A stretch of DNA of 41,751 nucleotides from positions 1 to 41,751 of the forward strand of contig NW_005434406.1 of the NCBI RefSeq assembly GCF_000315625.1, in the 5' to 3' direction. How positions within the stretch are numbered: position 1 is the first letter of the stretch; each line of letters starts with the position of its first letter. Positions 24,001 to 25,573 of this stretch are shown one piece after another. Source of the DNA: Guillardia theta CCMP2712 (taxonomy: Eukaryota; Protista; Cryptophyta). Made by a program: the position numbers and the translations under genes. The notes beneath the pieces are model-generated. The model saw only the letters and a program-made list of their open reading frames with translations. It did not search any database and was not told where the DNA came from.

Positions 24001-25573
24001 TCCTCATCCAAGACGTGGCCATCTCCGAAGGGCTCGTGCAGGACGGCTCCGTCGTCTTCGGCCCAGCTGGATCCGAGCTGACCGTCAACCCGGCATCCAA
24101 CTTCGACTACATGAGCACGTACGTGTGGGTAACGTTCGGGGACGTCCACCAGGGGCTGCTGGACGCGATCGGGTCGATCCGGGTTGACATCTGGACGCTC
24201 CACATCATCTTCATCGCGCTTTCGACGCTCTTGCTTGTCAACCTGCTCATCGCCATTATGGGCAACACGCACAGCAAGAACGAGAGCGGCGCCGGGACAG
24301 ACATGTGGTGGATGTTTCATGCTTACTACGTACTGAGGATCGAGTCGAACCTGTCGAGGGCAGAGAGGAACAGGCTGAGGAGCGGGGAGAGGATGGAGCA
24401 GCTGGAGAATGCGGGAGACGAGAGCAAGCACTTCAGGGTGAGGGTGGAGAACAGGAAGATGGAGATGGCGGGGGGAAGCGCGGACGTGCGAAACTACTCG
24501 GACGAGCGGGAGATCCGCAAGATGTTCCGGGAGAAAGACCCGCTGGGGGAGGGGGTCGTGCACGACTTCGCGCTCCTCGACGCCATGTGCGAGGTGATGG
24601 AATCAGTGAACCCTGGGGTGGAGGTACGCAGGCACGAGGTGTACGAAGTGATCAAGCACGACCTGAAGAAGCACGAGTGCTCGGAGCAGGAGATGATCGA
24701 GTTCTTCAAGTGCTGGGTCCCTCCCGAGCGGGAAAGAAAGGCCCTGATCCTGGTGGACGTGCAAGGCGAAAATCTCCAGCGATGGAACATCGGAACGCAG
24801 AAGTATCCGCCCGAGCTGACGAACCTGCTGTTCCCCCAGCAGTTCGATCTCGTGCTATGGACCAAGGACGTCAACGATCCCAGGAACCCGAAGAAAAGCA
24901 GGAGGATAAGGATCAAGCGAACAAGGAAGCAGCGGACGGGATGCGCCAGGCGGAGGAGGAGGGAGGAGCACCAGCAACAGCAACAGCAACAGCAACAGCA
25001 ACAGCAGGAGGAGCAAGAGGAGCAGGAGGTTACACTTCCTCCTACACCATCACAAAGGCATCGGAGTGCAAGCCGGAGATCTTGAAGGGTCTCTGTGATT
25101 TGAACACTTCAGAGCACTACGTCCTGCACAGAACGTCTGACCCCTCTTCATCCGGGGCTGGCTACTGCTCCAGCTGCTTCTTCGAGCAGAAAGTGTGGAG
25201 GGAGACTGGGCTGCGGAGGTTCTTGAAGGAGCAGAAGATAACGACTGTGGTTGTTGGTGGTTTCCTGTTCAACGGAGTTGTGGGGACGACGGCGTTGGAT
25301 GCTGTGGACTGCGGGTTCAGGTCGATTGTGGTGGACGATTGTAGTGACAATCAGGTGAGGAGGAGGAGGAGGAGGAGGAGATTGGAAGCAAGCACTATTC
25401 TCCTCTTAATCCTCTTCTTTTTCTGCACACACCCTCCCTCCCTCCCTCTCCTCCCTCCCTCTCCTCCCTCCCCTCCCTCCCTCTCTCCCTCCCTCCCTCC
25501 CTCCCTCCCTCTCTCACACTTTTTCTTATGGCAGATGAGGAGAAAGGACAAGATGAAAGATCTACTCAAGCAG
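21078..25573 (+). CDS. TRPV-like cation channel fused to an EF-hand-like segment and a C-terminal nicotinamidase/isochorismatase-like domain (3' end in N gap)
   Basis: Exon 21078-22227 has TRPV-type ankyrins (GETPLHIAIV...GAELHARAMGIFFQP...YYGELPLSFAAS). Phase-1 intron 22228-22704 joins in frame to GNTALHMAV, TPLTLA, WSFGTI..PLHQLD, KWIKFG, S5 GPLLMTVWRMLIGDVFKW, pore TFGD, S6 LLLVNLLIAIMGNT and TRP helix WWMFHAYYVLRIE. Then ALILVDVQ, FDLVLWTKD, and after a frame change TGLRRFLKEQKITTVVVGG...TTALDAVDCGFRSIVVDDCS. Last visible exon is 25535-25573. Start codon could lie further upstream. Confidence 0.9.
22262..22662. repeat. Intronic (CAG)n/(GAG)n tracts
   Basis: Within TRPV intron 22228-22704; source of spurious polyA/polyQ/polyL ORFs. 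Confidence 0.9.

Follow-up and report, generated by a model that had tools for sequence, protein, structure and literature searches.

A transcribed TRPV-like channel of the cryptophyte Guillardia theta with a C-terminal, probably inactivated nicotinamidase of the EF-hand type

TRPM2 carries at its C-terminus an enzyme-derived domain, NUDT9-H, which is a working enzyme in early-branching animals and without catalysis in vertebrates. In another TRP subfamily, TRPV, a fusion with an isochorismatase-like domain was published in 2026 from choanoflagellates (bioRxiv 10.64898/2026.06.15.732245; PNAS PMC13663828), and full-text literature searches returned no paper on a TRPV-isochorismatase-type fusion outside this group. 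The gene described here belongs to the cryptophyte Guillardia theta CCMP2712 and lies on the forward strand of a stretch of 41,751 nucleotides (contig NW_005434406.1 of assembly GCF_000315625.1, positions 1 to 41,751; hereafter the window), from approximately 21078 to beyond 25574, where a TRPV-like channel and a C-terminal nicotinamidase-like module form one transcribed gene. TRPV channels fused to an isochorismatase-like domain have been described before; what is new is a form that comes from a cryptophyte, is of the nicotinamidase type, is apparently dead as an enzyme and is preceded by a putative, degenerate EF-hand pair.

The coupling of TRPV channels to nicotinamide metabolism is known only from insects and nematodes, in which nicotinamide is a direct agonist of the channels OSM-9/OCR-4 and Nan-Iav, and a nicotinamidase (Naam/PNC-1) limits it in vivo (PMC5064019, PMC9683716, PMC12808645). 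In the insect channel Nan-Iav, nicotinamide is sensed by the ankyrin domain of Nan and not by an enzyme-like domain (PMC12808645), so a TRPV channel needs no enzyme-like sensor in order to respond to this metabolite. The remaining point of reference is a set of free nicotinamidases with EF-hands, which were compared here: P0026/P0014 (P0026 lying on a single Logan contig of run SRR28720663), P0022, the copepod protein P0023, PncA of Baffinella (KAJ1485899.1) and a longer form, P0027. These enzymes have a common order, formed by an EF-hand pair, the VDxQ strand, TxD, the Lys strand, the YSxFF lid, the Cys strand, the TALDAVDCGF helix and the VDDC strand.

The DNA of the window is eukaryotic in character, with introns, assembly gaps and trinucleotide repeats. 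On the forward strand, two long open reading frames (ORFs) share a frame (21036-22343 and 22755-25085), and a third ORF, in a different frame, has the isochorismatase match. Public sequencing runs were aligned to 20600-25574, and transcript contigs came from three runs of three studies (X1, X2 and X5). The gene is made up of the following parts:

21078-22224, + strand: exon encoding the N-terminal region and the greater part of the ankyrin repeat domain (ORF, 21078 being the first ATG; Pfam Ank; transcript contigs)
22225-22701, + strand: GT..AG intron of 477 nucleotides (transcript contigs X1, X2 and X5)
22702-24500, + strand: last ankyrin repeats, six-helix transmembrane domain, pore and TRP-helix region (PDB matches)
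24501-24734, + strand: putative degenerate EF-hand pair, colinear with that of the free EF-hand nicotinamidases P0026, P0022 and P0023
24735-24893, + strand: N-terminal half of the nicotinamidase-like domain, frame 0 (alignments, shuffle test)
24893-24894, + strand: site of a missing A, where frame 0 passes into frame 2 (transcript contigs X1, X2 and X5)
24894-25057, + strand: low-complexity stretch (translation; seen in transcripts as far as the repeat mask at 24948-25028)
25058-25354, + strand: C-terminal half of the nicotinamidase-like domain, frame 2 (PF00857, PDB phmmer, profile, AF2 model)
25355-25534, + strand: GT..AG intron of 180 nucleotides, predicted from the letters
25535-25573, + strand: predicted next exon of 13 codons, into the gap at 25574 (likewise predicted; by eye it resembles the helix after DDC of active enzymes, as in the C-terminus of P0026)

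The contigs of all three runs skip 22225-22701, joining 22224 to 22702, and since they are without this GT..AG intron they are transcripts and the gene is expressed; removal of the intron preserves the frame. Every contig of these runs that covers the site has one extra A behind 24893, within an A-run. The two halves of the domain are in different frames in the assembly because this A is missing from it, and in the mRNA, which carries it, the channel frame runs on into the frame of the second half; the frameshift-corrected ORF is open without a break to 25354. A single transcript contig covers 21223-24947 with the intron out and the extra A in, the contigs show zero further differences from the window across 21223-24947 and 25029-25348, and the transcript depth of the domain region equals that of the channel part. 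A GT..AG intron at 24870-25057 had been considered as the cause of the frame switch and was rejected, given that the transcripts retain the stretch and have the extra A; the low-complexity stretch belongs to the mRNA. Gene models drawn from the assembly only would show a frameshift or invent an intron at 24893-24894.

The contig alignments are interrupted at 24948-25028 and end at 25348. Both breaks are probably edges of repeat masks rather than biology, which fits the masks listed and the total of 764 masked letters. Two contigs extend 432 nucleotides past 25348, and one contig of X1 ends six letters beyond it, at the predicted end of the exon. Past the gap, no continuation of the gene was seen in 26448-26930. 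As for the intron at 22225-22701, it consists mainly of trinucleotide repeats of GCA/GCT type, which translate into poly-Ala, poly-Gln or poly-Leu whatever the frame, and a contig of X1 at 22375-22467, with a depth of 242 against 2248 in the exons, suggests some intron retention.

The first part of the protein is a channel that, judged by its similarities, belongs to the TRPV subfamily, with ankyrin repeats and a six-helix pore domain most similar to those of TRPVs. The ankyrin repeats are detected by Pfam Ank, and residues 263-355 align in one stretch with residues 177-271 of Nanchung (E = 1e-10); residues 1-261 had no alignment with Nan, and their matches were chance ones of low complexity. 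The best PDB match of the transmembrane part is Nanchung of the stink bug (9nvo, E = 4.9e-24, query 359-538 against 657-828), followed by TRPV4 (6.8e-13), Inactive (1.8e-11), TRPV6 and TRPV1, all of which are TRPV channels. The pore, LLVNLLIAIMGNTH, is located at 24231-24272 and the TRP-helix region at 24306-24344. Among the homologues of the gene in the database, a paralogue of Guillardia theta itself ranks first (44% identity), and the closest channel homologues, this paralogue included, are without a module of isochorismatase or nicotinamidase type. Of 13 homologues returned by a word search with the channel, none has the domain, and a word search with the pore region found P0001 and P0002 alone.

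Several lines of comparison agree on the kind of domain that follows the channel, whose nearest relatives, by sequence and by modelled fold, are nicotinamidases. Pfam recognizes Isochorismatase (PF00857) in its second half (E = 2e-9; 38 bits, the cut-off being 27), with a match confined to positions 98-148 of the 175 in the profile, and the top solved relatives by sequence, in a phmmer search of the PDB, are the nicotinamidases 9u8m and 2wt9. The frameshift-corrected C-terminus was also scored against a profile of three EF-hand nicotinamidases, where it reached 73 bits in two colinear stretches, one from the EF-hand pair through strand 1 and the other from the lid through the last strand; by parts, the C-terminal half scored 54.6 bits and the stretch from the EF-hand through strand 1 scored 17.9 bits. 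In the MAFFT alignment, the complete order is colinear with that of the EF-hand nicotinamidases. An exhaustive search of representatives gave 10 matches, led by nicotinamidases of eukaryotes that have an EF-hand pair at the N-terminus, one cluster coming from the cryptophyte Baffinella. The AF2 model of the C-terminal half (99 residues) has a predicted local distance difference test score above 80 at residues 41-90 and low confidence in the lid loop, and its best Foldseek match is the Drosophila nicotinamidase 9u8m, followed by 2wt9 and 3r2j (the Acinetobacter and Leishmania enzymes); its Atlas match is an arthropod cluster of EF-hand nicotinamidases. Feature searches of the Atlas returned generic TRP and isochorismatase clusters only.

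The motifs of the C-terminal half are HRT, GYCSSCFF (25160-25183), GGFLFNGVVG (25256-25285), TALDAVDCGF (25289-25318) and IVVDDC (25325-25342). Compared with P0014, the identity is 53% over 58 residues, and a run of ten residues in the last block is the same in both proteins. The N-terminal half is much less similar: taken alone, it has no Pfam and no PDB match and scores a weak 6.2 bits against a profile of nicotinamidase N-terminal halves, a value reached by 3 of 2000 shuffles. Its assignment, which includes the Asp of strand 1, is credible because of its colinear position.

The region in front of the domain is colinear in position with the EF-hand pair that precedes the enzyme in the free EF-hand nicotinamidases, and taken alone it scores a weak 4.3 bits (reached by 21 of 2000 shuffles). 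The Pfam EF-hand models find no match in it. The remnants of the two loops, at 24534-24572 and 24654-24692, are both without the Glu of position 12 and have also lost other ligands, so that, as read from the alignment, the loops are without the residues required for calcium binding.

The roles of the residues that form the active site of nicotinamidases, that is, the Asp-Lys-Cys triad, the metal ligands, the cavity and the oxyanion hole, are those given in PMC3581539, and each can be followed in the alignment along the + strand:

24756-24758, +: Asp of the triad in strand 1 (GAC), VDxQ in active enzymes and VDVQ here; kept
within 24735-24893, +: cavity, NDF in active enzymes and GEN here; F lost, with Asn in its place
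24861-24875, +: Asp and His of the metal site, TRDWH in active enzymes and TKDVN here; Asp kept, His replaced by Asn
24894 to about 25057, +: metal and cavity segment, PxxH and WPxHC in active enzymes and about 57 residues of low complexity here; lost
25130-25132, +: Lys of the triad, D/H-K-G in active enzymes and HRT here, with Arg at this codon; lost
Cys strand, +: oxyanion hole and cis-peptide, G-x-A (GVA or GLA) in active enzymes and GFL here; Gly kept, Ala replaced by Leu
25277-25279, +: nucleophile, DYC in active enzymes and NGV here, with Val at this codon; Cys lost

A previous interpretation of this DNA, made without database searches (the sequence-only reading), had pointed to the retained Asp, the change of the nucleophile from Cys to Val, HRT at the position of the KG lysine, TKDVN in place of TxDxH and the lack of a visible WPxHC motif, and the alignments bear out each of these points. 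The Asp falls on that of VDxQ in colinear order, within a half that is weak by itself. When GFLFNGVV is aligned to GLAYDVCV and GIATDFCV, Val occupies the position of the nucleophile, at which all ten relatives of the alignment (A1) have Cys, and Lys is present in every relative that covers its column. The PxxH motif turned out to be missing as well. In total, two of the three residues of the catalytic triad are replaced, and of the three metal ligands a single one remains. Out of 32 columns that are invariant in six domains of the active type, 15 are kept here and 17 are lost, the latter including DF, WH, the H of PxxH, W-P-H-C, KG and Cys; the functional invariant columns that are kept are only the Asp and Gln of strand 1, Ser in the lid and the Thr that follows the Cys position. 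The stretch that stands in place of the metal and cavity segment is rich in Lys, Glu and Asp, then in Ala-Thr and Gly, and runs over CAG/CAA repeats. Given the established mechanism, the loss of the Lys, the Cys, the Ala of the oxyanion hole and the metal ligands makes it very probable that the module no longer works as a nicotinamidase.

Degenerate nicotinamidase domains are found elsewhere in protists. P0017 (964 residues) and P0021 (639 residues), from Logan and JGI assemblies, have four and two nicotinamidase-like domains in tandem, respectively, and in P0017 the nucleophile Cys is missing, by eye, from every copy.

The divergence of the module is far from uniform. The last strand-helix-strand block has 38-57% identity to active enzymes, which among themselves have 34-66%, the Lys strand and lid have 17-24%, and the segment of the metal loop has 9-16%, against 19-56% among the enzymes themselves. 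The G+C content at third codon positions (GC3) is 0.44 in the low-complexity stretch and 0.72-0.90 in the flanking coding parts, and it is coding-like across the EF region and both halves of the domain. The parts that have decayed are those that form the nicotinamide and metal cavity, which speaks against canonical ligand binding, while a core that is preserved, a frame that stays open and a GC3 of coding character speak against pure drift.

How this locus relates to the described systems can now be stated more precisely. It shares with the choanoflagellate TRPV-ISC the ankyrin repeats, a pore of TRPV type and a Pfam Isochorismatase domain near the C-terminus, and it differs from it in that it belongs to another supergroup, its domain is of the nicotinamidase type and preceded by a putative EF-hand pair, and catalysis appears to be lost; the choanoflagellate texts do not mention nicotinamide, and the word "catalytic" occurs nowhere in the supplement of the preprint. 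With the insect and nematode axis, the likeness is that one half of the protein has Nanchung as its best solved match and the other the Drosophila nicotinamidase, although solved structures sample both families thinly; in animals the channel and an active enzyme are separate proteins, whereas in Guillardia they are fused and the enzyme part is seemingly dead. The free EF-hand nicotinamidases, in contrast to the Guillardia module, keep all catalytic and metal residues, have EF-hands detectable by Pfam and are not attached to a channel. TRPM2 resembles the present protein in having an enzyme-derived C-terminal domain on a TRP channel, and differs in the Nudix fold of that domain, its ligand (ADP-ribose) and the TRP subfamily. 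In addition, NUDT9-H of vertebrates has lost catalysis and retains its ligand pocket, whereas the pocket of the Guillardia module appears to be largely dismantled.

Taken together, these results can be accommodated by a scheme in which the C-terminus of the channel is an inactivated eukaryotic EF-hand nicotinamidase, in frame with the channel. Such a module would be incapable of hydrolysing nicotinamide, with Val in place of Cys, Arg in place of Lys and Leu in place of Ala, and it would not hold the metal of the active site, for which one of three ligands is left. It would represent the pseudoenzyme remnant of an ancestral fusion of channel and enzyme, and its present role in the cytosolic part of the tetramer would be non-catalytic, as a surface for docking or self-association rather than as a canonical nicotinamide sensor. 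The fusion, the expression of the gene and the replaced residues are direct observations, and the loss of activity and of canonical ligand binding is an inference from them. Both the structural role and the active state of the ancestral enzyme are conjectures, and to the scheme as a whole, that of an inactivated nicotinamidase retained as a non-catalytic scaffold, we give about an even chance of being right. A role in oligomerisation, the alternative named in the sequence-only reading, or as a scaffold would fit the selective conservation of the last strand-helix-strand block. Several points weigh against the scheme. The structural model is limited to the 99 residues of the C-terminal half, the N-terminal half is too diverged for an intact six-stranded fold to be assured, and the 3' end of the domain enters a gap of N (25574-26447). 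The uneven divergence could also come from the expansion of repeats in some segments only, and a non-canonical ligand site may be compatible with the sequence. Furthermore, no orthologue from which purifying selection on the domain could be read was found in the word, exhaustive representative and metagenome searches: the word search with a 154-residue piece of the domain had no match, none of the 10 matches of the exhaustive search is the protein itself, an orthologue or a TRP-linked protein, and the metagenome scan returned a bacterial PncA only. Among the matches of the exhaustive search, P0015 was rejected as a retrotransposon protein that matches by chance.

The sequence-only reading had proposed a pseudoenzyme kept for ligand binding, and of this proposal the dead enzyme stands, through the losses in the triad, the metal site and the oxyanion hole, while the NUDT9-H-like sensor finds no support, as the metal site and most residues of the pocket are gone. 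A domain without catalysis that nevertheless binds nicotinamide, nicotinate or some further NAD-related metabolite and controls the pore by allostery, in the manner of NUDT9-H in vertebrate TRPM2, is an idea that we consider unlikely. Its attraction lies partly in the best solved relative of the channel, Nanchung, which is one of the subunits of a channel on which nicotinamide acts as a direct activator (PMC5064019, PMC12808645), a chemistry for which a fused domain of nicotinamidase type would be the right kind of module. It also lies in several residues of the cavity that are kept, namely the Asp and Gln of strand 1, the Asp of the metal site, Tyr-Ser in the lid and the Thr that follows the Cys position. 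Canonical binding of nicotinamide, however, requires a metal ion and an aromatic cavity (PMC3581539), and here the metal that coordinates the pyridine nitrogen would not bind, NDF has lost its F and WPxHC its W, and the segment is of low complexity with near-random identity; moreover, the nicotinamide site of the insect channel sits in its ankyrin domain (PMC12808645). Hardly more probable, though still to be taken into account, is a relic devoid of function, produced by a chance fusion at the 3' end of the gene or left over from a lost use, which drifts while the channel works without it. The loss of the EF loops, the metal site and the triad as functional sites, the invasion of the domain by low complexity made of trinucleotide repeats, the closest channel homologues without the domain and the failure to find an orthologue that bears it would all be expected of a relic; the approximately 850 nucleotides that are open in frame, the last block, conserved as it is between active enzymes and including the ten residues identical to P0014, the coding-like GC3 and the transcript depth equal to that of the channel part would not.

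Two other explanations fare considerably worse. Some members of the isochorismatase-like superfamily work without Cys, and two Cys of the lid (25166-25168 and 25175-25177) lie next to the active site, so that an enzyme acting through other residues can be imagined, either with a Cys of GYCSSCFF as the nucleophile or with Cys-independent chemistry like that of true isochorismatases. This is very improbable: the Lys is lost too, as are the residue of the oxyanion hole and the metal site, the nearest relatives are all Cys-dependent nicotinamidases, and the lid loop is modelled at low confidence. Scarcely credible, finally, is that the fusion or the residue changes are produced by a misassembly beside the gap or by a wrong gene model: a one-base assembly error does exist within the domain and a gap comes directly after it, but the contigs of the three runs agree with the window in every other position covered and connect the channel with the domain's first half.

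To our knowledge, no endogenous soluble agonist other than nicotinamide is known for the TRPV channels of invertebrates. In this context, a natural fusion of channel and nicotinamidase in a distant alga is independent genomic evidence that the pairing of the two is functional and possibly ancient, and it leads to the prediction that TRPV channels of protists may respond to nicotinamide. It may also be the second case, after TRPM2, of a channel-enzyme with a dead enzyme part. A broader scenario, which we regard as doubtful, is that the coupling of Nan type between TRPV and nicotinamide is far older than animals and existed as fusions of TRPV and EF-hand nicotinamidase in protists; the ancestor would have been a self-limiting channel-enzyme, in which the entry of calcium switches on the removal of the agonist, and the Guillardia copy would have been inactivated, possibly remaining an allosteric sensor of pyridine metabolites. 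The weight of these considerations is limited by a domain that is in all likelihood dead, by its being known from one species and by the choanoflagellate TRPV with an isochorismatase-like domain that was already published.

Regarding the surroundings of the gene, a (GACGAG)n microsatellite lies upstream of it at 20590-20740 and draws many unrelated reads and contigs (word depth of approximately 85,000 in X1), being a nuisance for mapping rather than a feature. Downstream, an ORF of 239 residues without a Pfam match adjoins a neighbour on the opposite strand (26929-28028, minus), which has a Zn(2)-Cys(6) binuclear cluster domain of fungal type (PF00172, E = 1.5e-13, in two stretches).

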